From Obrimoposthia wandeli (Eukaryota): DNA of 64,000 nucleotides. Under the pieces are notes generated by a model. It worked only from the letters and a program-made list of their open reading frames with translations, ran no database searches and had not been told where the DNA came from. The stretch covers positions 1-64,000 of the forward strand of contig CDROCS010002105.1 in assembly GCA_977020255.1 (NCBI GenBank). The letters are read 5' to 3'. The number at the start of each line of letters is the position of its first letter. Positions within the stretch are counted from its first letter, which is position 1. Position numbers and translations under genes: made by a program. Shown here one piece after another: positions 6,015-32,319 of this stretch.

Positions 6015-8156
6015 TTAACTCTTAATCGTCTGAATTACTTTATCTGGGAAGCCAAAGTATTTTTGTGCACCATCATGATCGAGTAATAAACAGCTATTTG
6101 AAGCCGCAATATAAGATTTGTCGTTAGTCGTGAAAATGACCGTCGCTTCTGCCAGTTTCTCGGTAAATAACTTATTAATATATTTCACGTATTCTTTTTC
6201 GCAGCCTACAAAAGGCTCATCAATAACAATGACCCCCTGATCACAACAACCAAGACCCAGTGCCATCCGTAGTGATTGTTGCACGCCATTAGGTAATTGC
6301 TCGACATAATTAGACGACATATGGGTATCAAGCCCATCGGGTAACCATGGGTGTAAGTCAAAGAAGTCGATAATTTCTTCCATCTGATGTTTCGCAATCA
6401 CACCGTCGTGAATCATGAAATTAGATTCAAGCGTTCCTTCAAAAATGTGTAATTCAAAGGGTATGTAGTTAATGGCTTTACGATAGCGGAAATTATTGAA
6501 CTGCTGGATGTTGTAGCCATCCAGTAACACACTGCCTTGATAGCGATCTTCTAATCCTGCCAAAATACTGAGCAGAGTGGTTTTACCTGAACCTGAAATA
6601 CCTGAGATCGAGACTTTGTCACCTGCTTGTACGCTAAAGGCAAGGTTAGTTAATCCCTGGGGTGCTCCTTGATAGCGATGGGTGAGACCATTAACGCTAA
6701 CCTTCCCTTTAAAATGTCGAATTGGGGGGCTTTTTTCTAACTGATTACGGTCGTCATTTAACGACATTAACGCGTTAATTTGTGTGCTGGCAGCCTTAAT
6801 GGTTTTGAACTTGGTAATGGAGTTATAAATGCCCATGATAGGTCCTAATGCTTTCCACACTAAGATAATGATGGCGAGCATTGCGCCAGCTTCTGTTTCA
6901 CCCGCCATTACGCCTAAGACAGCAGTGATAATACTGGCTGTACCAATGGCTTGAATTAACCCTTGCCCCATAGATTGGATTTTACCGTTGGTTATCGATA
7001 CACCTTTGGCATCATCCAAACTCTGGTTATGTGCGGCATGAAAACGAGAACGAATAACGCGCAGTAACGGTAACCCTTGAATGGTATTAATGCTGCGCAG
7101 TAGCTCATTCCATTGATAAGATACCATGGCATTGGCACGTGAACTTTTGGCGGTTGCTTGGGTGTAGATATAGCGTGAATACACGCAAAACACTAACATC
7201 AAAGCAATACCGGCTAATACGGTAAGCGCGGCAGATCCAGAAATAATGGTGATTGCTAAAATGAATATGATAACAAATGGCATGTCAAAGTAGCTGAGTG
7301 TTGATTCAGCCGTCACCAGTTTTCGCAGTTGGTCGATGTCTTTCAATCGTGCTAATTGCGATGAAACGCCTGCCGATGACGTCATTGAATAGGGCAGCCA
7401 TAGTAGCTTGCTGATGACATTTTTAGATATATGGGTGGCAAGATCCTTACCAGATGTTGCGAGTATATTCATCCGAATACGCTTGAATCCATATTCAGAA
7501 AAAGCCAAGAATATAGCTAATGCTGTTAGCCAGAAGAGAGTGGTTTCAGAGCCCGAGGTAAGCGCGAAACTATAAACACCCATGATAAAGAATGGCTGCA
7601 TGGCACCAAGCAGATTTATGATGAAACTAAGGATCACTAAACTTTTTATTTCATCGTTATAACGGTAGAACGCGTATTTGATCCAGTTGGATTTATCTTG
7701 AGATTCTGGTGGTGGTTCTCGGAATATTTTGGAGTATTCAGATATTTCACAGACTGTACATGCTTCATTGGTAAGCGCATGCTCAAGCAGTACATTGTTT
7801 CGGTAATCGAATAACTTTGCCATGCCGTTTTCAATACCTAAAAAGATAGTGCATACATTATCGAATTCGATAAAAGCAGGTACAGAAACGTCTTTCAACG
7901 GAAGCATCGTCGGGTAGTGTTGTTTGTTACATTCGTAATCTAACCGTGACAAGGTGCTGGCAAAGCTGTCGATGTCTTTGTCTTGCGGTATGAAGGCATC
8001 GGTTAAGATTTCGGGCGTACCTTCCCATTGCAGTGTGACCAAAGTATAAGCGATGCCTAATATGGTTGGAGAGTCGTGGTAGCGCTCTTTGAATTTTGCT
8101 GAACCGAAGTCGCCTAATCGTTCTTCGGTGTTGCTGAAATCGATTAATACACTCAT
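6015..8156 (-). CDS. T1SS ABC transporter subunit, 713 aa (N-terminal extension + TMD + degenerate NBD)
   Basis: HlyB-like TMD; Walker A GISGSGKT; Walker B VIVIDEP; non-canonical signature LPNGV. Confidence 0.85.
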   Translation of the reverse strand: MSVLIDFSNTEERLGDFGSAKFKERYHDSPTILGIAYTLVTLQWEGTPEILTDAFIPQDKDIDSFASTLSRLDYECNKQHYPTMLPLKDVSVPAFIEFDNVCTIFLGIENGMAKLFDYRNNVLLEHALTNEACTVCEISEYSKIFREPPPESQDKSNWIKYAFYRYNDEIKSLVILSFIINLLGAMQPFFIMGVYSFALTSGSETTLFWLTALAIFLAFSEYGFKRIRMNILATSGKDLATHISKNVISKLLWLPYSMTSSAGVSSQLARLKDIDQLRKLVTAESTLSYFDMPFVIIFILAITIISGSAALTVLAGIALMLVFCVYSRYIYTQATAKSSRANAMVSYQWNELLRSINTIQGLPLLRVIRSRFHAAHNQSLDDAKGVSITNGKIQSMGQGLIQAIGTASIITAVLGVMAGETEAGAMLAIIILVWKALGPIMGIYNSITKFKTIKAASTQINALMSLNDDRNQLEKSPPIRHFKGKVSVNGLTHRYQGAPQGLTNLAFSVQAGDKVSISGISGSGKTTLLSILAGLEDRYQGSVLLDGYNIQQFNNFRYRKAINYIPFELHIFEGTLESNFMIHDGVIAKHQMEEIIDFFDLHPWLPDGLDTHMSSNYVEQLPNGVQQSLRMALGLGCCDQGVIVIDEPFVGCEKEYVKYINKLFTEKLAEATVIFTTNDKSYIAASNSCLLLDHDGAQKYFGFPDKVIQTIKS

Positions 8157-9760
8157 ACGGCAACCTTCTTCATAAATTTATGTTTAACCAAGCGGGTGTC
8201 GAGTTGTCCTAACTTGTTGCTGACGATTACGCAGATGAAGTTGTTAGATTTCGGTGTAATACACGATAATAATAAACGGCCAAATTGTTCGTCGTACACC
8301 ATGTCGATATCGTCAATCATTAATACTGGCTTGTTACTGAGTAAGGCTCGAACAACCAATAATGCGAATAATACCTGACGCGAAAATGGCAACTGAGTAT
8401 GGCTTGATATTTGGGTATAAAAACCATTTTTTAACCCATCAATTTTGTTTTTTATCGCTAAGTTTTCGCATAGGGAAAAAGCGGCATTATTCAAGTGAGG
8501 GCGAAAACAGGTGAGGTTATCGATGATAGACCCTTCCACTAATGTCGTATTTTTATCGACTTTGATAATGTCATTTCGCCATGTGGCATAATCAATGTCT
8601 GTTTGTGGTTGTTCATTAACGTGAATCGTAATCGCATCATCGTGTGTATCACGCGTTAGGCACCGTAGATGGTGGCTTTTTCCCGTACCGCTCACGCCAG
8701 TGAAAAGGTGAATATTTCCCTTAGAGAGTACAATGTTTTGTGGGGGCGTTATTCTATCTGTTGGCTGAGTACTCAGCGTGAGAGTATTCACGGGCTGTAA
8801 GGGAATATCCTCATGGGCTGTGGCTTCCAATTCCAGTAATTCACAAATACGTTCAATGTGCATTTGGTTTACCCGCCAGCGACTCAAGGTTTTCATAACT
8901 TGCTGGTAAGGGGCAAAGTAGCGATTGGTAAGAAGAATAACGGCAGCCATGACCCCTTGGCTAATTTCCAGGTTGATTACAGCACGCGCACACAGCACCA
9001 CCACTAAGGCGACAGAGAGTTGTTGAATTAACTGTAACGTGAGGTTAAATGATGACTCAAGACGTTCGTACTCAATGCTTTGGGTTTCACGTTCGCCGAT
9101 CATTTCGACCATCACACTTTCTACGCGGTATTCCATGGTGCGGCTTTTAATGTCTAATGGATTGGAGACGATTTCGATGATTTTGGAGCTGGTAAGCCCT
9201 TCGATATCCGATCGTTGTGATAAAACATCGACACGCTTTTGAGCAAGAAAGCGTGCAGTAACAAATAAAATGCTTGAAGCGATGATCAACGCTAAGCCTG
9301 CCCACATATTAATTAAGAAAATGATTAATACAGTAATCGCGCTAGTGCCGCCGTTGATCAGGGCTTTGATCGATTCCCCCCCGAAAAACTGTTTAATATC
9401 AGGGATTGTCGAAATACGTTCGAGGTATTCCCCCATTTCCAGACGATTAAAACGTTCAATATTAGCAGCACAAATAGCAAGAAAAACACTGTTGGTAAGC
9501 TGGCTTTCAAACCGCTTCATAATGACAGACACCAAGTATTCTTCTTGGCGTTTTAATTGGTAGTCGATAAAGATAGCCGTCAAAATAACCGCAAACAACA
9601 ACATCAATGAGTTGGTGGATTGATTCGGTAAGATACGGTCAAAAATAATCAAAATAGAAAAAGGTAACACCAAACCGAGCAGCGTGGTCATGATGGTAGA
9701 AAAGACCAAGTACACTTTATCTATAGGGCTTATTTTACGAGTAAATAAATGACTTTTCAT
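8153..9760 (-). CDS. Second T1SS ABC transporter subunit, 535 aa (TMD + degenerate NBD)
   Basis: IFDRILPNQ TMD motif; Walker A GVSGTGKS; Walker B VLMIDD; 4-bp overlap with the next gene. Confidence 0.85.
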   Translation of the reverse strand: MKSHLFTRKISPIDKVYLVFSTIMTTLLGLVLPFSILIIFDRILPNQSTNSLMLLFAVILTAIFIDYQLKRQEEYLVSVIMKRFESQLTNSVFLAICAANIERFNRLEMGEYLERISTIPDIKQFFGGESIKALINGGTSAITVLIIFLINMWAGLALIIASSILFVTARFLAQKRVDVLSQRSDIEGLTSSKIIEIVSNPLDIKSRTMEYRVESVMVEMIGERETQSIEYERLESSFNLTLQLIQQLSVALVVVLCARAVINLEISQGVMAAVILLTNRYFAPYQQVMKTLSRWRVNQMHIERICELLELEATAHEDIPLQPVNTLTLSTQPTDRITPPQNIVLSKGNIHLFTGVSGTGKSHHLRCLTRDTHDDAITIHVNEQPQTDIDYATWRNDIIKVDKNTTLVEGSIIDNLTCFRPHLNNAAFSLCENLAIKNKIDGLKNGFYTQISSHTQLPFSRQVLFALLVVRALLSNKPVLMIDDIDMVYDEQFGRLLLSCITPKSNNFICVIVSNKLGQLDTRLVKHKFMKKVAV

Positions 9761-9772
9761 TGTTTACTCCTT

Positions 9773-11206
9773 TTATTGGACTAAGAGATGTAATGGAATA
9801 GGGGAGTCGGTTTTCTTGTCGCCTACGGGTGACATTTGTTCGGCTATTTTCCCAATCGTATTCATATTCAAGTTGCCAATCAGTTCGTTCAGTTGTACCA
9901 AAGTAATGATGTAGTCGTAGCGGGTGCTCTCATAATCACGGATGCTGCTAAATAACTTACTTTCAGCGGAAAGAAGATCGGTGATGGTTCGTGTACCCAG
10001 TTTATGGGCTTTTTGAATGCCATTATAAGAGGCGTAATTGGCTTGAATAATGGTTTTTAAACTGGCTAACGACATGGAATAGTCGTTAATGTTATATATG
10101 AATTCATCGAACCGCTGCTGGCTTTGATCTTTACTGTCTTGTAAGTCAATTTCGGTGCGTTCTATGTCGACTTTATTTTGTTCATAGCGGTAGTAATCAC
10201 GACCGCCATTTAAAATAGGCACATTGAGCTTTAAGGTGTAAACGGCTTCTTCTGTCACGCCATTATCGGGAAATAGGGTGGCTGAGGCGTCATTGGTATC
10301 GTCATAGGTATAGCCGATACTGCCTGTTACTGAAGGCACAAAAGTTGCCCCCGTTTCTTTTAAGGTCTGCCTGCTTTTTTTGACCTGTTGCTGAGCGATG
10401 AGTAAGTCATAACCTGAGCTATACAAGATGTCGTTTAAGCGACGTTCTCGATCTAATGGTATCTCGGTGAACTCTATCGTTGATTGCAGATCATAATCAG
10501 GATTTAAAGGGCGCTGAACAATTGTTTCAAGCTGAGTCAGTATGACTTTTTGATCTTTTTTCAAGGTACGTAATGTGTTCGCCGTGCCTTCTTTTTGGGC
10601 TAACACTTCGTATTTTTCTGTACCTGCCATATTGCCGAGTTCAACGTTACGCGTGATTAATTTTAAACGGGAGATCGACGAATTCAATTCTGCCTGAGTC
10701 GCGCGAATTTGGGCGCTACTTTTCAAATATTCAAAATAGGTTGTAGATGCATCTCGGATAATTGCTTGGCGTGTTTGGGCTGTTTTTAGGGTTTCAATAT
10801 CAATATTTGTTCGTGTATTGGTGTGCGAATAAATATCGCCCAAATTAAACAATGTTTGTGACAGTGTCACGTTTACGCCGTGGTTGTTATAACTGTTGTC
10901 GGTGTTAGGGCTTGATGTTTGATGTGTTGTACCATCATTCCAATTGGTATTGGCAGAGACATTTAGAGAAGGAAGAAACTTTCCACGGTTAATATCGAGA
11001 TCATATTGTGAGGATCGCAAACCTGTTTCAGTGCTGTTGAGTGACAAGTTTTCTTGCAATGCAATATCGACCACTTCCAATAAATCGGCAGCAGAGGCTG
11101 TTAAGGGCAGTGAGGTCCCCAATAATAAAGCACATGACACTGCGGTTGAAACGCTAACAGATTTTCTTAATTGCCATGTATTTTTTAATAACTTTAATGA
11201 TTTCAT
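9773..11206 (-). CDS. TolC-family outer-membrane protein (start taken at MKSL; longest ORF begins at 11296)
   Basis: Signal peptide ending ASA|ADL; LPSLNVSA; LNVPILNGG; GTRTITDLLSAE. Confidence 0.9.
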   Translation of the reverse strand: MKSLKLLKNTWQLRKSVSVSTAVSCALLLGTSLPLTASAADLLEVVDIALQENLSLNSTETGLRSSQYDLDINRGKFLPSLNVSANTNWNDGTTHQTSSPNTDNSYNNHGVNVTLSQTLFNLGDIYSHTNTRTNIDIETLKTAQTRQAIIRDASTTYFEYLKSSAQIRATQAELNSSISRLKLITRNVELGNMAGTEKYEVLAQKEGTANTLRTLKKDQKVILTQLETIVQRPLNPDYDLQSTIEFTEIPLDRERRLNDILYSSGYDLLIAQQQVKKSRQTLKETGATFVPSVTGSIGYTYDDTNDASATLFPDNGVTEEAVYTLKLNVPILNGGRDYYRYEQNKVDIERTEIDLQDSKDQSQQRFDEFIYNINDYSMSLASLKTIIQANYASYNGIQKAHKLGTRTITDLLSAESKLFSSIRDYESTRYDYIITLVQLNELIGNLNMNTIGKIAEQMSPVGDKKTDSPIPLHLLVQ

Positions 11207-13403
11207 CACTTTTATACGGCTTGCTGATGACATAGTCCATCCCTGCTTCAATACATGACTTGTGTTCTGCTGCACTGGTGAGTGCGGTTGCACCAATAAT
11301 GGTAGCGGGTTGATTGATATCTATTTCTTGTTCTCGCTGGCGAATTAATTTCGTGGCTTCTAGCCCCCCCATACCAGGCATAATACAGTCCATGAAGACG
11401 ATGTCGGCACCGTGCTCTTTCATGTATTCGACCGCTTGTGCGCCATCACTGACGGTGTGGGAATCATAATCTTGTTTGCTCAGTAACTTTTTCAATAAAA
11501 ATTGTTGTACGCGATCATCTTCAACAATCAAGAAAGTGCTTTGAGTTTGTGTATTGGTTTCTTCAGTCTCTTTGAGCGCTTCTGATAAGTTTGGAATGAA
11601 CTCATACGGTATTAATGGGGTATAGAACACGCGATCAACATACTCATGGGTATCTTGCACTGTGCTTGATTCTGATGCGGCCAAAAATAATTTCGTTTTA
11701 GCGGATTTTTTCAGACGTGAATGCAATGTCTTACAAAAGGATTTCAGCTGAATGCCTTTTAGCGTATCGGTAATAATAATGGCATCGTAATTACCGATGA
11801 CGGGCAGTGATTGGAAGATGTCATTGGCGGTACGGATAACCTCAACCGTTGCGCCATATTGCGTTAAAATATGTGTCATGATGTCGATCTGTAGCAGAGA
11901 GTCGGTACAAATCATGATGTGTTTATTTTCAAGTGAACGTTCAATGCGATAAAAACACTTTGGCGTGATATCAATGGCAATATGTAGCTGCTGAAAAGGC
12001 GGCATCGACAAGGCGTCGCTATGTACTGTCCGCGCTTGAAACCATAATGATTTAAAATGACTGACCTTGGTTAAAATAGCCTTAGACCATTCATCATTAA
12101 TCCCGCTTTTTTCATCGACAGAATCCCATGGTGTATCTTGAATACAGGCGAGATCTACGTTATCGGTTGGCAAGAATAAAATCTCAAAGATTAAACGGGT
12201 TTGCTCAACGTCTTCTGCCGCTTCAGTGCGGATCTTCAGTAATATGTGTTTTTCATTTTGTGCTGATATGGCATTAGAGAGTTGTAAGAATAGAACCCAA
12301 AATAAGCTGGTGGAATTCCCTTCTATTTCTTCTGGTAAGTTCTCGCCCAAGCTGCATTCTAAGCTACGTTGTGATTGTTGTGTTTTTGCGGTTAAGTGCA
12401 CGATCAATTCAGACATGAAAGGCAGAAAAGAGATTTTGCCAGTTTGAGCCTTATTACCGCCAGAAATTAATCGATTATAGTTATCAGCAAGATCGGACAA
12501 GGTATTCGTTGCCAAGGTGACATCACGGGCCATCACTGCACCATTTTCACCAGCATCTTGCGCCATTAAGCGCACTCCACCTTGAATGGTGTTAGTCATA
12601 CCGCGAATTTCATATCCAATAAGGGCATAAAGCTGGCGGTATAAATCGGCATTACGTTTTTGAAATTCAACATCTTGATACATGGATGAAAGATTGGCGA
12701 AGATACGCCTTTCTATCGGGGGTGTTTCAAGGTTATTCAGTAGTGCCTGAATACCTTTAGCATCGATGCTTTCAAGTTGGGTTGCAAGTTGTTCAACATC
12801 ATGATGGGTGTGAGTATTGCGCTTGTTAACCTTCTTCCGACGAAATGCTTGTATTAAGACGAGAACAATAGCTATGCCGGTACAGAGAGCAAATATCAGG
12901 AGCGTTTGATAAAAAAGTTGTTGTTGTGTGTGGTAATAATCGGCTTCTACAATATTGATGAGGTTCTGATGGGCAGCTTGTAGCGCGACATAACTGTTTA
13001 GTAACGATTGTTGAAACGAAGTGATATCACCCGTTGCCAAATATTTATCAATCGATACTTGCAACCGTGGGTGTACGACACTTCCCACTAAACTGACTTT
13101 AGACTTTTCAAAAGAAGCCTGGTGTTCAAAGTCTGTAATTTGCAGGCGCAGTGCGCTAATAGGTAAACCTAGGTGCGGCGAACTAGGTATGCATAGTGTT
13201 TTCTCACAACCTATTACTGTTAGCATTAGTGCTTCAGTTTTATTCACTAAGGCAGCTGAACTTTGTAGTAAATCCGATTGTAGGCTGGCGGTGTAATCGT
13301 CGTTATTATTCAGCCAACGCCAACCCATTAGGATTTGTGCGAATATAAACCCTATAAGTAAGACGAATGAGATTCTAGTGATTGTATTCTTTGACATATT
13401 CAC
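11154..13403 (-). CDS. Membrane-bound hybrid sensor: 2 TM, periplasmic domain, degenerate HisKA/HATPase, pseudo-REC, intact C-terminal REC
   Basis: H-box reads LIGYEIRGMTN; N-box remnant LSNAI with no recognisable G boxes; REC motifs LIVEDD, FMDCIMP, SKP. Confidence 0.85.
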   Translation of the reverse strand: MNMSKNTITRISFVLLIGFIFAQILMGWRWLNNNDDYTASLQSDLLQSSAALVNKTEALMLTVIGCEKTLCIPSSPHLGLPISALRLQITDFEHQASFEKSKVSLVGSVVHPRLQVSIDKYLATGDITSFQQSLLNSYVALQAAHQNLINIVEADYYHTQQQLFYQTLLIFALCTGIAIVLVLIQAFRRKKVNKRNTHTHHDVEQLATQLESIDAKGIQALLNNLETPPIERRIFANLSSMYQDVEFQKRNADLYRQLYALIGYEIRGMTNTIQGGVRLMAQDAGENGAVMARDVTLATNTLSDLADNYNRLISGGNKAQTGKISFLPFMSELIVHLTAKTQQSQRSLECSLGENLPEEIEGNSTSLFWVLFLQLSNAISAQNEKHILLKIRTEAAEDVEQTRLIFEILFLPTDNVDLACIQDTPWDSVDEKSGINDEWSKAILTKVSHFKSLWFQARTVHSDALSMPPFQQLHIAIDITPKCFYRIERSLENKHIMICTDSLLQIDIMTHILTQYGATVEVIRTANDIFQSLPVIGNYDAIIITDTLKGIQLKSFCKTLHSRLKKSAKTKLFLAASESSTVQDTHEYVDRVFYTPLIPYEFIPNLSEALKETEETNTQTQSTFLIVEDDRVQQFLLKKLLSKQDYDSHTVSDGAQAVEYMKEHGADIVFMDCIMPGMGGLEATKLIRQREQEIDINQPATIIGATALTSAAEHKSCIEAGMDYVISKPYKSDEIIKVIKKYMAIKKIC

Positions 13404-13409
13404 AACTCT

Positions 13410-14768
13410 TTACCTCTCATCAAATGCGTCTTCCATGGCGCTCATTACCGGTTTTAATGCGTAATCAATGGCGTAGCGTGAACCCGTCTTTATATCGGCA
13501 GTGAATTCCATGTAAGGGGATAAAGTGTATTTTGCGCCAGATTTTTCAAGAAAATCCTGTTGAATAGTGATCTTCGCAATATAGAATTCATTCTCTTCTT
13601 CTTTATATGATGAACGACTAATAGAGTTAATCGTGCCAGAAATAAATCCGTATTTTGCAAAGTTATAGGTGTCAAACTTCAATTTCACTTCCTGACCTAT
13701 CTCAACAAATCCCATGTCTTTCTTTGGTATTTTTGCTTCGCCGTGAAGCGTGTTTTTGATTGGAGAAATGTCAGCAATACTTTCATTCGGAGGAATAACG
13801 GCTGATTTAAAGTTGAAGTGTACTTTGTCGACTACGCCGTCGACAGGCGAATACACCGTTAAGCGCTCTACTTTGTCGGTATGCTGGGGTAGTTGTGCTT
13901 TTTTCAGCGAGAGATCTTTTTCAAGTTGGTTGATTTGTGTTTGGTACTCGGCATTACGATTGGCTATGGTGTCATTCAGTTGTTTTTCCAGTCGTGCGGA
14001 TTGAAACTGCTCGTTCATTACGGCTTCATCTAGGTTTTCTATCTCTCGTAACATGTTTGTTTCTTGTACTTGCATATTGAGTACATCGATATAAGACGCC
14101 ATTTCTTCTTTATAGAGGGTTTCTTTGATTGATAGCTGCTTTTTGATTAACCCTAATTGCTTGCGTGAGCTGTTAATACGGTTTTTCATTGAGACGATAA
14201 GGCGATTCTTGTGTTCAATATCAAGGCTCATTAGTTCTTGATTTGAGGTGTTTTTCTGAAATTCTTTTTGCCATGACTCAATATTTTGTGTGATCAGCGT
14301 GGGATAAGCACTAAACGATGAAAAGTCAGGAAGTGTTTGTTTAATTAGCCCCAAATAACGGGTGATTTCAATTTCTAACCCAACGATATCTAATGTCGCT
14401 GATTCGAGTTGGGTATTTCGATCAACCGATTTAAGCCGAGCAATGGGTTGGCCTGCGTAAACGTAATCGCCAGTTTTGACTAAGAGTGTGTCGAGAATTC
14501 CGCCTTCCAAATGCTGTACGCGCTCAATGTCTGAATCGAGCAGCATTTCGCCGCGAGATGATACAACTATGTCAATTTGGGCTTGCGATGCTAATACGAT
14601 AAGTAACATAAAAGCGGCAAACATAAAGAGCAACGACTTATGCACGGTTGTCATTGCGCTCTTGATATAGACATTATTTTCTATTTCTATATCATTTTTG
14701 TGCTTAGATTCCACTAATGCTTTTTTTATGTGTTTTTCTATACCCACTGCATCGACTCCTTGAAACAA
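13410..14768 (-). CDS. HlyD-family T1SS membrane fusion protein
   Basis: VQHLEGGIL, VKTGDYV.AGQ, VYSPVDGVV, GQEVKLKFDTYNFAKYG. Confidence 0.93.
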   Translation of the reverse strand: MFQGVDAVGIEKHIKKALVESKHKNDIEIENNVYIKSAMTTVHKSLLFMFAAFMLLIVLASQAQIDIVVSSRGEMLLDSDIERVQHLEGGILDTLLVKTGDYVYAGQPIARLKSVDRNTQLESATLDIVGLEIEITRYLGLIKQTLPDFSSFSAYPTLITQNIESWQKEFQKNTSNQELMSLDIEHKNRLIVSMKNRINSSRKQLGLIKKQLSIKETLYKEEMASYIDVLNMQVQETNMLREIENLDEAVMNEQFQSARLEKQLNDTIANRNAEYQTQINQLEKDLSLKKAQLPQHTDKVERLTVYSPVDGVVDKVHFNFKSAVIPPNESIADISPIKNTLHGEAKIPKKDMGFVEIGQEVKLKFDTYNFAKYGFISGTINSISRSSYKEEENEFYIAKITIQQDFLEKSGAKYTLSPYMEFTADIKTGSRYAIDYALKPVMSAMEDAFDER

Positions 14769-14778
14769 TGACCTTCTG

Positions 14779-15105
14779 CTATACCGTTAACGTTAGAACC
14801 TGTTGGTTAACTCTAGCGACTTCTTCTAAGGCTTCATCCAGAAGCTGTAGATTCGGTTTTTCACCGTGCTTACATAAGTTTTCGATGGTTTCTAGTTGTA
14901 ATGTGGCTTTCTCTTCACAAAGCGTCAGTAATACGCCTCGAAGGGAATGTATGGTGTGAAACAACCCATCAATATCTTGGTTTGCATATTGATTCTGTAT
15001 CACACGTATATCATCCCCGTGTTCTTCACTATAAAGTTCGATAATCATCGAAATCATGTCGCTATCATCGCCCATAGAGGTACTGAAATCCGTGTAATTT
15101 ATCAT
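14779..15105 (-). CDS. Stand-alone Hpt (histidine phosphotransfer) protein
   Basis: LFHTIHSLRG Hpt motif in a ~108-aa helical protein; SD AAGGGAGA before MINY. Confidence 0.85.
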   Translation of the reverse strand: MINYTDFSTSMGDDSDMISMIIELYSEEHGDDIRVIQNQYANQDIDGLFHTIHSLRGVLLTLCEEKATLQLETIENLCKHGEKPNLQLLDEALEEVARVNQQVLTLTV

Positions 15106-15416
15106 GATATCTCTCCCTTTTTTCCCCAGATTGAAACGTAGCACTTAGAATATAAAACGGCTTTCTAACAATAATTTATGGTCTAGGTTTGACTATATAT
15201 CAAGACAAAATTTAAATTATTGAACTTTCTTATTTCGAACAATATTCCACATGTAAAACGGTCATTTTTTTGACGCTAAGTATGCGTAATATCACTTTTT
15301 ATTTATTTAAAAGTGAATCACTCTCAATATATTTGCCAAATCATTTTTGTTGTTCTTATGTATATATATGAAAGTTTGTTTTGTACATAAATGACAACAT
15401 TGTATGGAGTTCTCAA

Positions 15417-18400
15417 ATGGCGAAAAATAAGAGCGATAAACATCAGGATAAAAAGAATGATGACAACAATGAATTGAATGATGCTGTTGAGAATATTGCT
15501 ACGCCGAATGAAGGGACTGATGATACTCGTGGTCATGATAGACAGAACTTGCAAAATACAGTTGCAGCAGCCACAGCTACCGGTGCTGAGTCATCAGGTT
15601 TAGCCGATGAAATCAATGCCGCCATGAATGACAATCCTTCCGGTGCGGGTCGAGAAGCGCGAGGGGGGCAGCGTCGCGCAGAAGAAAAAAATGCGAACGA
15701 TGATGATAAATCACAAGGGCGTGGTGGTAATAAGCAGGCACAAGAACCAATAAATAATGGTCGTGATAATAATAATGATGCGACGGGAGGAACGGCACCA
15801 CAATCTGTTGGTGGTAACACGCCACAAGGGGATCCTTCTGGTAGTGGTAATGATACGCCTCAATCAAAAACGGATACAAGCCCTGAGCAACAGAGTGCTG
15901 GGGGGGCTGGTGGCGGTAGAGGAGGTCAGGCTCGCAACCAAGAGGTAGACACGGCAACAACCAGTGAAACATTTGAAGTCGATGTGGCGGATGCGATAGC
16001 TGCTGATTTATCTGTTGAAGATGAATTTGATACTAAAAGCAGCTCAGAAACGTTAGAAGTTCAAGTTAATAACGTGAACGACGAAGTCGTTATTGATGAT
16101 GAAATTGCACCTATGTTTGATGGTGTCGAAGATACTCAGATTGTATTTACTGAAGCTGAACTATTGGCAAATGCGAGTGATGTCGATGGTGATGATTTAA
16201 GTGTTGAAAATCTAAGTATCGATAATGCGACGTTTGCCATTGAAATTGATCCTGAAACGGGTGAAAAATCCTTTGTTGTTACGCCAAATGAAAATGTAAA
16301 TGGAGAATTGAAAGTAACGTTTGATGTGTCGGATCAGAATGGCAGCGAAGTTGCCTCTGGTGCAACACTGAATATTGCAGCCGTCAATGATGCGGCGGTT
16401 GTAACTGACACTGATATTGGTGGCACCGAAGATACCGCCATTACCTTTACCCAAGAGATGCTGCTACAAAATGCGACGGATATCGACAGTGATGATCTGA
16501 CCGCACTTAACCTGAGTATTGATGCCGAATACGGCGCAGTTGTTGATAATGAAGATGGCACCTTTACCTTCACCCCAACGGCCGATTATAACGGCGACGT
16601 GCCTTTCACCTTCGATGTTGATGATAACGATGGCGCAGTCACGCAAGCCTCGGGTAGTCTCGATGTCGCGGCAGTGAATGATGCGGCGGTTGTAACCGAT
16701 GCCCGACACTGATATTGATGGCACTTGAAGATGCCGCCATCACCTTTTTACCCAAGAGATGCTGCTACAAAATGCGACGGATATCGACAGTGATAATCTG
16801 ACCCTAATCGCGCTTAACTTGAGTATTGATGCCGAATACGGCGCTGTTAAGTGATAATGAAGATGGCACCTTTAGTTTCACACCTACTCTGGCTGATTAT
16901 AACGGTGATGTGCCTTTCACCTTCGATAATCGATGACAATGATGGTGCGGTAACGCAAGCCTCGGGCACCCTTGATATTGCAGCCGTCAATGATGCGGCG
17001 GTTGTAACTGACACTGATATTGATGGCACTGAAGATACCGCCATCACCTTTACCCAAGAGATGCTGCTGCAAGTTACAAAATTACTTGCGACGGATATCG
17101 ACAGTGATAATCTGACCGCGCTTAACTTGAGTATTGATGCCGAATACGGCGCTGTTGTTGATAATGAAGATGGCACCTTTAGTTTCACACCTACCGGCGA
17201 TTATAACGGTGATGTGCCTTTCACCTTCGATGTCGATGACAATGATGGTGCGGTAACGCAAGCCTCGGGCACCCTTGATATTGCAGCCGTCAATGATGCG
17301 GCGGTTGTAACTGACACTGATATTGGTGGCACTGAAGATACAACCATCACCTTTACCCAAGAGATGCTGCTACAAAATGCGACGGATATCGACAGTGATA
17401 ATCTGACCGCGCTTAACTTGAGTATTGATGCTGAATACGGTGCTGTTGTTGATAATGAAGATGGCACCTTTACTTTTACACCCACTCTACGATTATATAA
17501 TGCACCATGATGTACCTTTCACCTTCGATGTCGATGATAATGATGGTGCGGTAACGCAAGCCTCTGGGCACCCTTTGATATTGCAGCCGTCAACAATGAT
17601 GCGGCGGTTGTAACTGACACTGATATTGGTACCGAAGATACCAAAGCATTACCTTTACCCAAGAGATGTTGCTACAAAATGCGACATTTGATATCGACAG
17701 TGATAATCTGACCGCACTTAACTTGAGTATTGATGCTGAATACGGCGCAGTTGTTGATAACGAAGATGGCACCTATACCTTTACACCTACTGGTGATTAT
17801 AACGGCGATGTGCCTTTCACCTTCGATGTCGATGACAATGATGGTGCGGTAACGCAAGCCTCGGGCACTAGTCTCGATATTGGTGGCAGTAAACGATGCG
17901 CAGTCATGTAACACGCCCACTGATATTGGGCACTGAAGATACCGCCATCACCTTTACCCAAGAGATGCTGCTACAAAATGCGACGGATATCGACAGTGAT
18001 AATCTGACCGCGCTTAACTTGAGTATTGATGCTGAATACGGTGCTGTTGTTGATAATGAAGATGGCACCTTTACTTTTACACCTACCGGCGATTATAACG
18101 GCGATGTACCTTTCACCTTCGATGTCGATGATAATGATGGTGCGGTAACGCAAGCCTCGGGCACCCTTGATATTGCAGCCGTCAATGATGCGGCGGTTGT
18201 AACTGACACTGATATTGATGGCACTGAAGATACCGCCATCACCTTTACCCAAGAGATGCTGCTACAAAATGCGACGGATATCGACAGTGATAATCTGACC
18301 GCACTTAACTTGAGTATTGATGCCGAATACGGCGCCGTTGTTGATAATGAAGATGGCACCTTTACTTTCACACCGACCGGCGATTATAACGGCGATGTAC

Positions 18401-21400
18401 CTTTCACCTTCGATGTCGATGACAATGATGGTGCGGTAACGCAAGCCTCGGGCACCCTTGATATTGCAGCCGTCAATGATGCGGCGGTTGTAACTGACAC
18501 TGATATTGGTGGCACCGAAGATACCGCCATCACCTTTACCCAAGAGATGCTGCTACAAAATGCGACGGATATCGACAGTGATGATCTGACCGCGCTTAAC
18601 TTGAGTATTGATGCCGAATACGGCGCCGTTGTTGATAATGAAGATGGCACTTTTACCTTTACACCTACCGGCGATTATAACGGCGATGTGCCTTTCACCT
18701 TCGATGTCGATGACAATGATGGTGCAGTAACGCAAGCCTCGGGCACCCTCGATATTGCGGCAGTGAATGATGCGGCGGTTGTAACTGACACTGATATTGA
18801 TGGCTCCGAAGATGCCGCCATCACCTTTACCCAAGAGATGTTGCTACAAAATGCGACGGATATCGACAGTGATAATCTGACCGCGCTTAACTTGAGTATT
18901 GATGCCGAATACGGCGCTGTTGTTGATAATGAAGATGGCACCTTTAGTTTCACACCTACCGGCGATTATAACGGTGATGTGCCTTTCACCTTCGATGTCG
19001 ATGACAATGATGGTGCGGTAACGCAAGCCTCGGGCACCCTTGATATTGCGGCGGTGAATGATGCCCCCGTGCTTGCCGAAACCTCGTACGAGGTGAATGA
19101 AGATGGCAGCATCGTGATCACTGAAGCCTCGCTAGTTGATAATGCTACAGACGTTGATAACGATGTGTTATCAGTGGCAAGCATTACCTCCGATGGACAT
19201 GGCACGGTCACTCAAAATGAGGGCGGCGATTGGGTGTATACCCCCAATGCTGATTACAGTGGTGACGCCAAGTTAACCATTACCTTGAATGACGGCACGG
19301 TGGATGCCGAATTTACAGCCCCCGTTACGATTACGCCCGATGCCGATGTGCCGTCGTTAACCGTGTCACTGACTGACATGAGCTTAATTGATTACGGTGT
19401 GGGTCAAGACAGCGCCCTCACAGGCTGGCAGACCGATAATCACAATAACCATATCGAAATTCATCAAGATCATGTCTACGGGGTCGGTGATAACCGCGGT
19501 GGGGTGATTGAACTTGAAGCCAATCGGGGTGATGAGTCTAACTTATACACCAACCTTGATGTGCAAGCCGGCGATGTGGTGACTTTATCGTTTGATATGT
19601 CTGCTCGATTGCATCATGAAGGGGCAGACTCGCAAGTTGATATTTACTTTGAAGGGGTGTTGATTGATTCATTGGCCCCAGAAGACGCGGGATGGGAAAG
19701 CCATACCTATCAGTTGACGGCGACAACGGATAATCCACGATTAGAATTTGATTCCCCCGATGATAACAGCCTAGGTGGGCTGCTCGATGCCATCACTGTC
19801 GTCAACGATATTATTGAAGATCAGGCTGTGCCTATCGTGATTGATAGCGCGGTACTGGATGCTGATGACTCTGAATCCCTACAATCGGTCGTTATCGATA
19901 ACTTACCTGATGGCGCCACGCTAACGGATGGGGTAAACACCTTTACCGCCAACGGTGACGATAACAGTGCCGATGTACTGGGTTGGGATCTTAGTAGTTT
20001 AAGCTTCCAAGGTGCCGAGAATTTCAATGGTCCAGTGTCATTAGCCATTACCTCTACCACGGTCGAAAACAGCACCAGTAATGATGAAACACCCGAAACG
20101 GCTTCAACGACCAGCAAGTTGGAGTTTGAAGTACAAGCAGTGAACGATGCGGTTGTGATTGATGCCGACAGCGTACCGCAGTTTAACACCGATGAAGATG
20201 CCGAAATCATCATCACAGAGGCGGCTTTATTAGCCAATGCCAGCGATGTCGACGGTGATGATTTAATCATTACCAACTTGAATATCGACAATGCCAGCTT
20301 TACAACCGTGATTGACAGTGAAACGGGGGATAAGTCATTTGTTGTCACCCCGAATCAAGACGTGAACGGTGATTTGAACATCACGTTTAATGTGTCCGAT
20401 CAAAACGGCAGTCTTGTTGCTTCTGATGGCACATTGACGGTTGCGGCAGTGAATGATGCAGCAGTAGTCACCCCAACAGATATTGGTGGCACCGAAGATA
20501 CCGCCATCACCTTTACCCAAGAGATGTTGCTACAAAATGCGACGGATATCGACAGTGATAATCTGACCGCACTTAACCTGAGTATTGATGAGCAATACGG
20601 CGCTGTTGTTGATAATGAAGATGGCACCTTTAGTTTCACACCCTAAGCGGTGCAACGGTGATGTGCCTTTCACCTTCGATGTCGATGATAATGATGGAGC
20701 GGTAACGCAAGCCTCGGGCACCCTTGATATTGCGGCAGTAAACGATGCAGCAGTCATCACGCCCACTGATATCGACGGGACTGAAGATACCGCCATCACC
20801 TTTACCCAAGAGATGTTGCTACAAAATGCGACGGATATCGACAGTGATAATCTGACCGCACTTAACCTGAGTATTGATGAGCAATACGGCGCTGTTGTTG
20901 ATAATGAAGATGGCACCTTTAGTTTCACACCTACCGGCGATTATAACGGTGATGTGCCTTTCACCTTCGATGTCGATGATAATGATGGAGCGGTAACGCA
21001 AGCCTCGGGCACCCTTGATATTGCGGCAGTAAACGATGCAGCAGTCATCACGCCCACTGATATCGACGGGACTGAAGATACCGCCATCACCTTTACCCAA
21101 GAGATGCTGCTACAAAATGCGACGGATATCGACAGTGATAATCTGACCGCGCTTAACTTGAGTATTGATGCTGAATACGGTGCTGTTGTTGATAATGAAG
21201 ATGGCACCTTTACTTTTACACCTACCGGCGATTATAACGGCGATGTACCTTTCACCTTCGATGTCGATGATAATGATGGTGCGGTAACGCAAGCCTCGGG
21301 CACCCTTGATATTGCAGCCGTCAATGATGCGGCGGTTGTAACTGACACTGATATTGATGGCACTGAAGATACCGCCATCACGCTTTACAGAAGATGCTGC

Positions 21401-24400
21401 TACAAAATGCGACGGATATCGACGGTGATGATCTGACCGTACAGCAACTGAAGTATTGATGCCGAATACGGCGCCGTTACTGATAATGAAGATGGCACTT
21501 TTACCTTCACCTCATAAGCGATTATAACGGCGATGTACGCTCACCTTCGATGTCGATGACAATGATGGTGCAGTAACGCAAGCCTCGGGCACCCTCGATA
21601 TTGCGGCAGTGAATGATGCGGCGGTTGTAACTGACACTGATATTGATGGCTCCGAAGATGCCGCCATCACCTTTACCCAAGAGATGTTGCTACAAAATGC
21701 GACGGATATCGACAGTGATAATCTGACCGCGCTTAGCAGGTATTGATGCCGAATACGGCGCCGTTGTTGATAATGAAGATGGCACCTTTAGTTTCACACC
21801 CTCTGCGGCGATTATAACGGCGATGTGCCTTTCACCTTCGATGTCGATGACAATGATGGTGCGGTAACGCAAGCCTCGGGCACCCTTGATATTGCGGCGG
21901 TGAATGATGCCCCCGTGCTTGCCGAAACCTCGTACGAGGTGAATGAAGATGGCAGCATCGTGATCACTGAAGCCTCGCTAGTTGATAATGCTACAGACGT
22001 TGATAACGATGTGTTATCAGTGGCAAGCATTACCTCCGATGGACATGGCACGGTCACTCAAAATGAGGACGGCGATTGGGTGTATACCCCCAATGCTGAT
22101 TACAGTGGTGACGCCAAGTTAACCATTACCTTGAATGACGGCACGGTGGATGCCGAATTTACAGCCCCCGTTACGATTACGCCCGATGCCGATGTGCCGT
22201 CGTTAACCGTGTCACTGACTGACATGAGCTTAATTGATTACGGTGTGGAGTCCGAACAGCGCCCTCACAGGCTGGCAGACCGATAATCACAATAACCATA
22301 TCGAAATTCATCAAGATCATGTCTACGGGGTCGGTGATAACCGCGGTGGGGTGATTGAACTTGAAGCCAATCGGGGTGATGAGTCTAACTTATACACCAA
22401 CCTTGATGTGCCAAAGTAAACGATGTGAGTGACTTTATCGTTTGATATGTCTGCTCGATTGCATCATGAAGGGGCAGACTCGCAAGTTGATATTTACTTT
22501 GAAGGGGTGTTGATTGATTCATTGGCCCCAGAAGACGCGGGATGGGAGAAAGCCATACCTATCGGTTTGACGGCGACAACGGATAATCCACGATTAAAAT
22601 TTGATTCCCCCGATGATAACAGCCTAGATGGCTGCTCGATGCCATCACTGTCGTCAACGATATTATTGAAGATCAGGCTGTGCCTATCGTGATTGATAGC
22701 GCGGTACTGGATGCTGATGACTCTGAATCCTACAATCGGTCGTTATCGATAACTTACCTGATGGCGCCACGCTAACGGATAGGGTAAACACCTTTACCGC
22801 CAACGGTGACGATAACAGTGCCGATGTACTGGGTTGGGATCTTAGTAGTTTAAGCTTCAAGGTGCCGAGAATTTCAATGGTCCAGTGTCATTAGCCATTA
22901 CCTCTACCACGGTCGAAAACAGCACCAGTAATGATGAAACACCCGAAACGGCTTCAACGACCAGCAAGTTGGAGTTTGAAGTACAAGCAGTAGACGATGC
23001 GGTTGTGATTGATGCCAAACAGCGTACCGCAGTTTAACACCGATGAAGATGCCGAAAATCATCATCACAGAGGCGGCTTTATTAGCCAATGCCAGCGATG
23101 TCGACGGTGATGATTTAATCATTACCAACTTGAATATCGACAATGCCAGCTTTACAACCGTGATTGACAGTGAAACGGGGGATAAGTCATTTGTTGTCAC
23201 CCCGAATCAAGACGTGAACGGTGATTTGAACATCACGTTTAATGTGTCCGATCAAAACGGCAGTCTTGTTGCTTCTGATGGCACATTGACGGTTGCGGCA
23301 GTGAATGATGCAGCAGTAGTCACCCCAACAGATATTGGTGGCACCGAAGATACCGCCATCACCTTTACCCAAGAGATGTTGCTACAAAATGCGACGGATA
23401 TCGACAGTGATAATCTGACCGCACTTAACCTGAGTATTGATGAGCAATACGGCGCTGTTGTTGATAATGAAGATGGCACCTTTAGTTTCACACCTACCGG
23501 CGATTATAACGGTGATGTGCCTTTCACCTTCGATGTCGATGATAATGATGGAGCGGTAACGCAAACTCGAGCACCCTTGATATTGCGGCGGTAAAACGTG
23601 CAGCAGTCATCGCCCATTGATATCGACGGCACTGAAGATACAGCCATTACCTTTACCCAAGAGATGCTGCTGCAAAATGCGACCGACATCGATAGCGATG
23701 ATCTGACCGCGCTTAACCTGAGTATTGATGCTGAATACGGCGCAGTTGTTGATAATGAAGATGGCACCTTTACCTTCACCCCAACCGGCGATTATAACGG
23801 CGATGTACCTTTCACCTTCGATGTTGATGACAACGATGGCGCGGTAACGCAAGCCTCGGGCACCCTCGATATTGCGGCAGTGAATGATGCGGCGGTTGTA
23901 ACTGACACTGATATTGATGGCTCCGAAGATGCCGCCATCACCTTTACCCAAGAGATGTTGCTACAAAATGCGACGGATATCGACAGTGATAATCTGACCG
24001 CGCTTAACTTGAGTATTGATGCTGAATACGGCGCAGTTGTTGATAATGAAGATGGCACCTTTACCTTCACCCCAACCGGCGATTATAACGGCGATGTACC
24101 TTTCACCTTCGATGTTGATGACAACGATGGCGCGGTAACGCAAGCCTCTGGCACCCTCGATATTGCGGCGGTGAATGATGCCGCAGTGGTGGATGATCAA
24201 GCTTTTACTATTAATGAAGACGGTACTATTACGTTCACCGATGATCAGCTGTTAACAGGCGCTTCGGATGTCGAACAGGATGATGTAACCGTCGATTCTG
24301 TGACGTACGGTGGAGCGGATGGTGTGTTCACCGATCATGGTAACGGCACATATACCTTTGCACCGAATGAAAATTTTAACGGGGACGTTGATCTAAGTTT

Positions 24401-27400
24401 TACTGTTAGTGATGGCACAGCCTTAACCCCTGCAAATATCGACATTCATGTTGAAGCTGTTAATGATATTCCTGTTGCTGGTTCTACTTCTTACTCTGTT
24501 AACGAAGACGGTATTCTCACTTTTACTGATGCCCAATTGCTTGCTAATTCCAGTGATGTAGAAGGCGGGGTCAGTATTGATGCAGTTACGTATTCAGGAA
24601 CAGACGGCATACTGACCAATAATGGTAATGGTACATACTCTTTTGCCCCTAACCCTAATTTTGAAGGGCATGTTGCATTTGATGTGACAGTAAAAGATGA
24701 AGAGGGCGCAACAGCAACGACTAGCGCAGAGGTTGATGTACTTGCTGTAAACGATACGCCAGTTGTAACGGGAAATGTGGCGTATAACGTAAACGAAGAT
24801 GGCACGATTACGCTGACGCAAGCACAGTTACTGATGCATGCATCAGACGTGGATGGCGACGATTTAACAGCAGTCAATCTACACTTAGAAGCCTTCGGTT
24901 CAGTTGAAAAGCATGACGATGGTTCGTTTACCATCACGCCTGCAGAGAACTTCAATGGTGATTTGCAGTTAACCTTCGATGTAACTGATGGACAAGAAAC
25001 CGTCTCTACAGGGCTCGATTTAACCGTTAACCCGGTGAATGATCCGGTGGTAGCACAAGATGATAGTCGTCTTGATGGAATGGATCCGCTTATTCGTTTA
25101 GATGCCGCACCAGAACATGGTTCGGTGCAGTATCTGAATGAAGACGGTGAATGGGCAGATATGGTTATTGGCTTAACATATCCAGCCGATACTCAAGTAC
25201 AGTTTACCCCTAATACCGAAGAAATTCAGGCTGACACGCGAGATATTCGTGTGGGTAGTTTTGACAATGATACGTCAACGCGCATTTTTGATGGTACAGC
25301 TACAGTAGAAGATTGGGGTACCGTTGATGGTGATACTGCGGTCTATGTTGAAGACGGCGTCACTATTACGACTCAAGTGAATACAGGAGAGTTGGCAACT
25401 TGGAATGGTGCAGGAACTGCAACCGGAGCTGGTATAGGTAATGACTCTCGCCAAGGGTTAGACACCAATGAAATGCTAACAGTGACGGTTGAGGGGGAAG
25501 ATGTTAATCAGATCACCTTTCAGCTTGACGGTTTGGGTGGATATTTTGATAACACCAGTAGTCATGCGACAGAAGTGAACATCAAGGCTTACGATGCCGA
25601 TGGTAATTTAATTGATACCCAAGGTGGATACCGAGATTCTGGCGAATATCAAGATACTTACGCGTTTACGACAGATGTTCCCGTTCATCACTTTACCCTT
25701 GGTACAACAGGCAGTGATGGTACCTATGTAGTCCAAAACATGACGGTGTCACGCACCATGTCTGAAGAAATTCAGATGACGACGATTCAGTCTGACGGTA
25801 GCGAAATCAGTCATGCTTTAAACCTCGACCTTAATCACAGCACTGCAGATCAAACTCTTGATGTCACCGAACAGTTAATTGACATCAACGAAGGGATTAC
25901 ATCTCGTGCCATTGAAGTGGAAGAAGACGGTCAGCTTGTTATTCAAGCAGCAGACTTACTGCTTAACGACAATGATGTCGATGGCGATATTTTATCTATT
26001 TCAGCGGTTAGCGCGACAGATGATACTCATGGTGAGGTATCACTAGACGAAGATGGCAATGTAGTATTTACGCCTGAAGCCGATTATAACGGCCCTGCTT
26101 CTTTTACTTATACCGTAACTGACGGTAATGGTTCTTACGATACGGCAACCGTGTCGGTAAACGTTACCCCAGTAGATGATCTTCCTGTTGCTCCAAGCTT
26201 GAGTCTTAATGTTGATGAAGATCAGGTATTGGTCATTGACCCTGCTTATATTTTAAGTCAAGCCAGTGATGTGGATGGCAATCAACTCTCGCTAGAAAGC
26301 CTTTCGCTAAAACAGCCTCAAAACGGCAGTTTACAGTTACAACAAGATGGTATGTACCACCTCATTACACCACCTGACTTTAATGGGTTAATCGAGCTAG
26401 ATTACCAAGTGTCTGATGGTAACAATGTGGTTGATGGCGGTATGAAAGTCGACGTGTTGCCGGTTAATGATGCCCCGTTTAATGGTGGCAATGCGCATTT
26501 AACCACTTACGAAGACGGTGCTTTCACTTTTAATGCTAATGATATGTTGGATTTGTTTGGTGATATTGATGGCGATGACTTAGTTATTTCTCGCATCATT
26601 AATGCTGACGGTGACGAAAGCGGAACCCTTGAAGATAATGAAGATGGAACATGGACATTTACCCCAACAGATGATTATGCAGGAACCGCTGAACTGCAAA
26701 TAGAAGTGAGTGACCCTGATGGATTAACCACCTTGCTGACCATGCCTGTTTTTGTCCGCCCTGTTGCCGATGGTGCGGTGATAACAACAGATCATGATGG
26801 ACCTCTTGTTTTTGACGAAGATACCACGGGTTTACTGGGTTTGAATGTCGATATGATCGACTCGTCGGAAGTATTAAGTCATTTAGTGATTACTGGCTTC
26901 CCTGTCGGGTTTGAAGTCTCTGATGGTGTACATTCTGTAATGATCACAGAGCTGGGGCAAATTGTTGATGTTACCGAGTGGAGTTTCAATGATCTTTCGA
27001 TTACTCCACCACAAGATTTCTCTGGTAACTTTTTCATTACCGTTTCAGCAACGACGGCAGATTATGGTGAAACAGCGTCAAGCCAAGTGACACAACCGAT
27101 AGAGAACTATACAGATTTCGATGTGGTTGAAAGCGGTACGCTAACCCTGACCATTGCCGATCTTTTAGCAATGGCTGGCGACATTGAAACATCACCCTCA
27201 GATGAAATACACGGTGTACACCTTATTGATCGCAGCCAAGGAGAGCTGGTTGATAACGGGGATGGCACATGGCTATTTACCCCAGCTGATGGGATGAACG
27301 GTAACGTTGATTTTGCTTATCAGGTAAATCATGACGGTGAAAAGAGTGATGTGCAAAGCTCTATTGCTGTTAATGATGCTGAACCAACGAATACAGCTTC

Positions 27401-32080: not shown

Positions 32081-32319
32081 GTATTGTTCGATCTCCACCT
32101 TTCCATCAGCTGTGTGTTAAAACGCATTGGCGTACTGATACCTTGCCATCGTAAATTGCTCTCGATGTTTCAAACACTGCATTGTTGTTAACGTATTTTT
32201 CCGTCCAATGGGGTTTTCGTCCCCTTACAGTTGTTTTTTCGTGACTATGTCCTAAAAAATCAGCAAGATAAATGATGTCAGCGCTGGCGTTTTTTCAGTA
32301 TTTAAGAAGAGATCTGACT

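Follow-up and report, generated by a model that had tools for sequence, protein, structure and literature searches.

We analyzed a window of 64,000 nucleotides (nt), positions 1 to 64,000 of the forward strand of contig CDROCS010002105.1 in the Obrimoposthia wandeli assembly GCA_977020255.1, and describe here a membrane protein of 749 amino acids (aa) encoded inside a type I secretion operon. Six closely packed minus-strand genes across positions 6015-15105 encode, in the direction of transcription, a histidine phosphotransfer (Hpt) protein, an HlyD-family membrane fusion protein (MFP), the 749-aa protein (whole gene 11154-13403, minus strand), a TolC-family outer membrane factor (OMF), and 2 ABC permease/ATPases (ABC1 and ABC2). 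This order, with small gaps or overlaps between genes, had been reported by an earlier reading of the sequence alone (the first-pass annotation) and was confirmed on the minus strand. The Hpt and HlyD genes are 10 nt apart, the HlyD and sensor genes 6 nt, and the TolC and ABC1 genes 12 nt, and ABC1 and ABC2 overlap by 4 nt. The start of the TolC gene is uncertain. Of 3 in-frame candidates, the GTG at 11140 is 13 nt past the stop of the sensor gene, and those at 11233 and 11296 overlap that gene; the true start is probably 11140 or 11233. The spacing of the genes suggests that their translation is coupled. The window sequence contains 0 N. Judged from the comparisons below, the 749-aa protein is probably a regulator of adhesin secretion that has not been described before, rather than the product of a decayed gene.

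Domain layout and kinase ancestry of the 749-aa protein

The 749-aa protein is built, from the N terminus, of a transmembrane helix (TM), a periplasmic four-helix bundle, a second TM, DHp-like helices (dimerization and histidine phosphotransfer), a CA-like domain (catalytic and ATP-binding), a pseudo-receiver, and a receiver. The cytoplasmic part of this layout is that of the hybrid kinase ShkA, here carried on a membrane sensor. The periplasmic four-helix-bundle domain (residues 31-161; 12921-13313, minus strand, as for all domains of this gene) lies between TM1 (residues 8-30) and TM2 (residues 162-187). An AlphaFold 2 (AF2) model of the N-terminal 235 residues was all-helical, with the order TM, four-helix bundle, TM and a predicted local distance difference test score (pLDDT) of 76, and Foldseek matches of the periplasmic domain to the sensor domains of Tsr, Vc1313, QseE, and NarQ were weak (E 0.02-0.07). 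The DHp-like helices (residues 247-322; 12438-12665) carry the motif LIGYEIRG, in which Tyr264 (TAT, 12612-12614; numbered from the GTG start of the protein) occupies the position of the phospho-His. The CA-like domain of Bergerat fold (residues 323-482; 11958-12437) keeps the N-box Asn377 in LSNAI and has the G1 and G2 boxes deleted, with no DxGxG or GxGxG downstream of LSNAI in the sensor. The terminal receiver (residues 622-745; 11169-11540) is intact, with the motifs EDD, FMDCIMP, and SKP and the pocket residues Asp629/Asp630, Asp672, Thr706, and Lys728.

The only Pfam match in the sensor was this C-terminal receiver (PF00072, residues 625-739, E 4e-25). HisKA and HATPase_c gave no Pfam match in the sensor, neither Pfam nor NCBIfam supplied a family-specific name, and the Pfam scan identified no output domain in the protein. 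The closest solved relatives of the receiver are the hybrid-kinase receivers of RcsC, SLN1, and AHK5, which partner with Hpt proteins. Preceding it, residues 492-615 aligned with many receiver domains (VIA-align Z 16-17, root-mean-square deviation [rmsd] about 1.9 A), and in the alignment CTDS replaces the acidic DD and YTP replaces KP, with Thr for Lys. Because this region has a receiver fold without the acidic pair and the conserved Lys, we assigned residues 490-612 (11568-11936) as a pseudo-receiver.

A family profile searched against the sequences of solved structures retrieved receivers only, and it took structure prediction and profile-profile comparison to recognize the kinase-like part. 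By hhalign, a profile built on residues 225-615 of 24 family members was aligned with a second profile, built on 9 true hybrid kinases, at a probability of 96.6% and E 4.8e-10 over 351 columns, placing GYEIRG on SHE.RtP, Tyr264 on the phospho-His, and LSNAI on the N-box, with unrelated residues opposite DTGIGI (G1) and GTGLGL (G2) of the true kinases. BLASTP against a true PAS-HisKA-HATPase kinase placed ALIGYEIRG on ANVSHEVRT and LSNAI on CSNAIKF. The MAFFT alignment with Marinobacter hybrid kinases had the same Tyr264 register as the other 2 methods, and every family member was gapped opposite DTGVGI (G1) and GAGLGL (G2) of the Marinobacter proteins. The AF2 model of residues 225-615 had a mean pLDDT of 80, mostly 72-94 in the CA-like domain with 66 in 1 block. 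Its best Foldseek match was full-length ShkA (E 2.5e-12, 375 columns), followed by ZraS, RetS, and GacS, with further matches to CpxA and YycG, and VIA-align superposed it on the CA domain and first receiver of ShkA with Z 18.1 and an rmsd of 3.9 A over 251 residues.

The protein thus has the DHp plus Bergerat-fold CA architecture of a HisKA-type kinase and its N-box Asn, and lacks the phospho-His, the G1 (DxGxG) box, and the G2 (GxGxG) box. These comparisons support a histidine-kinase homologue that would be unable to work as a canonical kinase, and we infer that it cannot autophosphorylate. They also bear out what the first-pass annotation had read here: a Tyr264 at the phospho-His position (by hhalign, BLASTP, and MAFFT), an N-box remnant, LSNAI, with no G1 or G2 box (by motif reading and the alignments), and a pseudo-receiver followed by an intact receiver (by motifs, Pfam, and fold comparison). 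Its view of the protein as a kinase-dead sensor homologous to hybrid kinases is likewise supported by sequence, profile, and model comparison.

Family conservation and secretion context

A word-index search returned 38 full-length relatives, of which 0 had a HisKA or HATPase_c call. Scanning 1 genome per species yielded 79 loci, and 68 species carried a family member, including Photobacterium, Vibrio, Aliivibrio, Shewanella, Oleiphilaceae, Psychromonas, and others. The position of Tyr264 was Tyr in 63 species, Phe in 4 (Oleiphilaceae and a Pseudomonadales metagenome-assembled genome), Asn in 1 (Colwellia), and His in 0. The Glu that follows it (H+1) was invariant (68/68), the G1 and G2 boxes were missing in all 68 species, and the N-box Asn was present in 55, with Ser, Asp, Glu, Arg, or Lys in the remaining 13. 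Conservation of Tyr264 and of the G-box loss in homologues, a check proposed with the first-pass annotation, therefore held across the family, with no His and no G boxes in any species, so the loss of the His is old and fixed. The receiver pocket was fully kept where each position is present: Asp629 and Asp630 in 68/68, Asp672 in 67/67, Thr/Ser706 in 67/67, and Lys728 in 66/66, with FMDCIMPGMGG nearly invariant, as in phosphorylatable receivers. In the periplasmic domain, Cys66 and Cys71 were each conserved in 65 of the 68 species. A second family copy was identified in the same assembly (contig C506, 526597-528765), with 35% identity, the motif LLGYEVRG, HlyD upstream, and TolC downstream.

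The sensor has an intact open frame and is 89-90% identical to its counterparts in 3 Photobacterium species. Compared with 15 distant Vibrio, Aliivibrio, and Shewanella members, the window protein showed 69% identity in the receiver, 63% in the DHp-like helices, 46% in the pseudo-receiver, 39% in the CA-like domain, and 23% in the periplasmic domain, making the DHp-like helix the best-conserved part after the receiver. The missing G boxes had been taken as real degeneration of the kinase part, and this is the wrong word for a protein whose DHp-like helix is conserved at 63% against 23% for the periplasmic domain. Since the Tyr-bearing helix is under strong constraint, the change is one of repurposing and not of decay. 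The fold is kept, the His is lost, and the loss is conserved under purifying selection, which is what defines a histidine pseudokinase.

HlyD was directly upstream of the sensor gene in 68 of 68 family loci. TolC and both ABC genes were also present in nearly all complete loci, in nearly all of them the sensor gene was flanked by the MFP and OMF genes, and a giant adhesin with cadherin repeats was found beside nearly all family loci, usually in divergent orientation. No family member outside an HlyD/secretion context was found in the species survey. In the window, ABC, MFP, and OMF are encoded together with an adjacent candidate substrate, as in a type I secretion system. The HlyD-family MFP (13410-14768, minus strand) scored above its NCBIfam cut-off (TIGR01843, 286 bits vs 208.65), whereas TolC and the 2 ABC proteins had Pfam matches but fell below the NCBIfam subfamily cut-offs. 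The TolC-family OMF (9773-11296, minus strand) matched Pfam OEP (E 2e-47) and scored 169.5 bits with TIGR01844, below the cut-off of 225.15. ABC1 (8153-9760, minus strand, 535 aa) matched Pfam ABC_membrane and, weakly, ABC_tran, with a degenerate nucleotide-binding domain. ABC2 (6015-8156, minus strand, 713 aa) has an N-terminal extension and matched ABC_tran (E 2.5e-17) and ABC_membrane; its best NCBIfam model was TIGR03375 (type I secretion LssB), with a score below cut-off. ABC1 keeps Walker A and has the signature PFSRQV, a Walker B (DDID) without the catalytic Glu, and the H-loop SNK, and ABC2 keeps Walker A and IDEP, with the signature LPNGVQQ and the H-loop TND. These asymmetric features were conserved in 65 loci and suggest a heterodimeric type I secretion ABC transporter with 1 predicted dead ATP site.

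The presumed substrate is a giant cadherin-like/tandem-95-repeat adhesin (15381-28622, plus strand; NF012211, Cadherin_4, Cadherin_5, and Big_9), divergent from the operon. By eye, no LapA-type retention module was obvious at its N terminus. Right after the adhesin, a 209-aa open reading frame (ORF; 28796-29425, plus strand) encodes an N-terminal membrane helix and IPxVL-type repeats with no Pfam match; it is conserved in the same place in Photobacterium profundum (locus L007, 50-769) and at further Photobacterium loci and is a possible member of the secretion module. A LapG-family (Peptidase_C93) match with no shown link to the operon lies on the same contig at 244686-245021 (minus strand), about 180 kb beyond the window end. 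The assembly containing the window comprises 1.35 Gb in 6912 contigs and has 13 LapG-family matches, and from these figures we take the window to be a Photobacterium-like contig within a much larger mixed assembly.

Phosphate supply and role of the module

The Hpt protein of the operon (14779-15105, minus strand, 108 aa) scored above the Pfam cut-off (PF01627, E 4.9e-8, 33.5 bits vs 24.6) and, as first read, keeps its His (His53) in an HxxKG-type motif, HSLRG. Its likely start is the ATG at 15105, preceded by a AAGGGAGAG ribosome site. The His was kept in 30 species, including this one and all Photobacterium, Shewanella, Oleiphilaceae, and Psychromonas members found. Further, true hybrid kinases with HisKA, HATPase_c, and 1 or 2 receivers adjoin ABC2 in many lineages, among them the Vibrio splendidus clade, Aliivibrio fischeri, Thaumasiovibrio, Psychromonas, Shewanella, Paraferrimonas, and Vibrio sp. 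SCSIO 43135. The last of these (locus L004, 17429-21908) lacks the upstream Hpt, and its ABC2 gene is followed by those for a 548-aa receiver protein, a 111-aa Hpt that carries the His, and an 816-aa true hybrid kinase, a gene set that amounts to a complete phosphorelay attached to the same secretion module.

On balance, we favor the reading that the 749-aa protein is a conserved histidine pseudokinase serving as a relay-fed regulator in a type I secretion module dedicated to the giant cadherin-repeat adhesin. Its receiver would be phosphorylated from outside via the Hpt, the donor being a true hybrid kinase whose gene lies elsewhere. By analogy with DivK~P on DivL, the phosphorylated receiver might dock on the conserved Tyr-bearing DHp-like helices, and docking would set the conformation of the membrane protein and so tune adhesin export or surface retention via the co-translated MFP/ABC/TolC machinery. 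The signal could also run in the opposite direction, the pseudokinase signaling how the machinery stands by making its receiver available or unavailable as a drain of Hpt~P.

Several observations weigh against this reading. The Hpt route had been proposed from the first: the receiver of Hpt-partnered type and the His-bearing Hpt at this locus speak for it, but not for its universality, as the His position of the Hpt-like ORF is changed in 21 species, to Lys in 18 (the Vibrio harveyi and splendidus clades) and to Tyr in 3, and several Vibrio loci had no credible upstream Hpt ORF. Where the His is lost or the ORF is missing, the receiver must be fed otherwise or is not phosphorylated. No true kinase adjoins the operon in the window. 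The only true hybrid kinase nearby (33558-35624, minus strand, 688 aa, with a weak HisKA, HATPase_c, and a receiver) lies about 5 kb past the adhesin, after genes for a methyl-accepting chemotaxis protein (30177-32006) and an aminotransferase (32272-33501), and is a candidate phosphodonor by position only. It was rejected as an orthologue of the ABC2-adjacent kinases, with 23-25% identity and a generic relation. In the AF2 model, the DHp part has a pLDDT of 52-63 and is drawn as a single long helix, and the N-box Asn kept in most species means that sequence by itself leaves room for residual nucleotide binding. What points to contact between the sensor and the secretion machinery is gene order. 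Lastly, the adhesin gene is broken here into at least 8 open pieces, with at least 4 reading-frame changes within a single repeat unit at 16660-16900. In relatives, the adhesin is encoded without interruption in one frame (1815 to more than 2660 aa), and the neighboring 9 kb of secretion genes in the window is intact; dense single-base insertions and deletions limited to the tandem repeats of the adhesin resemble assembly or polishing noise more than they do natural decay.

The main rival, unlikely in our judgment and yet to be taken seriously, is that the protein affects transcription alone, as a gated sink or branch point for phosphate, and that the pseudokinase never contacts the secretion machinery. 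Here, the receiver would drain Hpt~P, and the periplasmic bundle would control access to the receiver and so the phosphate reaching a separate DNA-binding response regulator of adhesin or biofilm genes. A receiver without an output domain, an Hpt encoded in the same operon, and the true hybrid kinases and extra receiver proteins that adjoin the operon in some species, such as Vibrio sp. SCSIO 43135, would all fit such a sink, as would the ShkA-like layout, the pseudo-receiver of ShkA controlling access to its terminal receiver (PMC6969517). However, a protein that regulates transcription alone would not usually show invariable linkage to HlyD, a place between the MFP and OMF genes at nearly every complete locus, and spacing of the coupling type. 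The locus also has no conserved DNA-binding regulator, and a simple sink would not require the strong conservation of the DHp-like helix.

A more specific proposal, which we regard as doubtful and put forward tentatively, makes the protein a phosphorelay counterpart of LapD engaged in inside-out signaling. Hpt~P would load the receiver, and the phosphorylated receiver would clamp the Tyr-bearing DHp-like helices in a DivL-like reversal of signal flow. The change would then pass outward via TM2 to the periplasmic bundle with its conserved Cys pair, and the bundle would engage the MFP, TolC, or the adhesin as a retention/release switch or would open the asymmetric ABC heterodimer. The sensor contains no HAMP or GGDEF-EAL domains and the operon contains no LapG gene; the likeness to a LapD-type receptor is a functional analogy only.

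It is improbable that the protein is a structural or scaffold subunit without phospho-signaling, in which the folds serve as interaction surfaces and the receiver pocket is kept for structural reasons or for metal binding. Loss of the Hpt His in 21 species that retain the rest of the module would suit such a role, as would the other degenerate part in the locus, the nucleotide-binding domain of ABC1. Against it stand the 5 pocket residues kept wherever their positions are present and the nearly invariant FMDCIMPGMGG; pocket conservation of this kind is typical of phosphorylatable receivers and is unlike that of the pseudo-receiver in the same protein. Very little likelihood attaches to an atypical active kinase that is phosphorylated on Tyr264 itself, as DivL was at first proposed to be, or that binds nucleotide in another mode. 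The nearly fixed Tyr, the invariant H+1 Glu, and the frequent N-box Asn would be expected of it, but Phe and Asn replace Tyr within otherwise intact modules, natural variants that speak against a requirement for the Tyr hydroxyl and hence disfavor Tyr phosphorylation as a general mechanism; in addition, the G1 Asp and G2 lid are deleted in all members, and there is no Pfam HATPase_c match. Strain-specific decay or a sequencing error in an ordinary hybrid kinase, which a single base change from His to Tyr and the frame breaks in the adjacent adhesin gene might suggest, is refuted by the homologue survey, with a His or G boxes in 0 of 68 species and an intact sensor frame 89-90% identical to those of 3 Photobacterium species.

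Known systems and significance

The 749-aa protein is classed with the histidine pseudokinases (DivL, PsmA, and RetS-like proteins), and DivL and PsmA set precedents for giving a kinase-dead kinase a new use. DivL of Caulobacter crescentus keeps its ATP-binding CA domain. It is a histidine pseudokinase with Tyr at the phospho-His position, and its repurposed core senses the phosphorylated receiver DivK~P (PMC4211667). Both proteins have a HisKA-type DHp-CA fold, Tyr in place of His, and a membrane anchor. Unlike the 749-aa protein, DivL has PAS inputs, no receivers, and no Hpt partner and controls CckA in the cell cycle, and the 2 show no specific sequence relationship past the shared superfamily. 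ShkA, also from Caulobacter (PDB 6qrj, PMC6969517), is a hybrid kinase with the order DHp, CA, pseudo-receiver, and receiver that feeds the Hpt protein ShpA. It shares with the 749-aa protein the order of 4 cytoplasmic domains and a stand-alone Hpt partner and was the best structural match. In contrast to the 749-aa protein, ShkA is soluble, carries His23, binds AMPPNP, and is a true kinase, and sequence identity is 8-11%. Its pseudo-receiver binds cyclic di-GMP (c-di-GMP) through R324, Y338, R344, and S347 on the alpha4-beta5-alpha5 face (PMC6969517), and at this low identity these sites are not transferable by sequence.

PsmA of Streptomyces is a hybrid histidine-kinase-like pseudokinase that works by protein-protein contact (PMC12963549). 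It resembles the 749-aa protein in its hybrid-kinase layout and in the lack of both an H-box His and a working lid, the ATP lid of PsmA being incompatible with ATP binding. However, the His position varies in PsmA (Glu, Asp, Gln, Val, or Tyr), whereas Tyr is nearly fixed in the 749-aa family, and PsmA is cytoplasmic and polar and binds DivIVA, with no link to secretion or to an Hpt. The membrane sensor RetS has tandem domains of receiver type and modulates the phosphorelay of another kinase. The Pseudomonas aeruginosa protein (PDB 6dk7 and 7n0e) was among the top structural matches of the DHp-CA part (Foldseek E 1.6e-8, 16-22% identity) and is a non-canonical sensor acting on GacS. Unlike the 749-aa protein, it keeps the H-box His and has a 7TMR-DISMED2 input, and its gene lies outside secretion operons.

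Accessory inner-membrane regulators of adhesin type I secretion are known from LapD/LapG (PMC6890996) and from SiiA/SiiB of Salmonella SPI4 (10.1101/641415). Like the 749-aa protein, LapD and SiiAB are additional inner-membrane components whose genes accompany an ABC/MFP/OMF set, and they control the fate of a giant adhesin via degenerate signaling domains (LapD) or a borrowed motor (SiiAB). The 749-aa protein differs in that it lacks HAMP-GGDEF-EAL domains and MotAB-like parts and its operon encodes no transglutaminase-like protease partner. The signal currency would differ as well, with phosphoryl transfer serving here and c-di-GMP or proton flux in LapD and SiiAB. Papers on Aeromonas MbpS/MbpD and Vibrio cholerae LapDG were considered as prior descriptions and rejected as different systems. 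In the literature, we found no type I secretion operon described as encoding a kinase-like protein, although coverage of the search was incomplete and absence from it is no proof of novelty.

Type I secretion operons are taught as consisting of ABC, MFP, and OMF genes only. Here, about 70 species of marine bacteria have an Hpt and a hybrid sensor with a dead kinase as fixed members of such an operon, and the carriers include the tractable Aliivibrio fischeri and Vibrio harveyi as well as oyster-associated species of the Vibrio splendidus clade. The nearly fixed Tyr, with its natural Phe and Asn variants, is a ready-made test of the role of this residue. If the assignment is true, a well-populated and easily testable family would be added to the few known bacterial histidine pseudokinases. 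If the protein were in addition a counterpart of LapD, this would be the first type I secretion system gated directly by a two-component phosphorelay. Should the sensor control export or surface display of the adhesin, phosphorelay signaling would be tied directly to adhesion and biofilm formation in marine bacteria.

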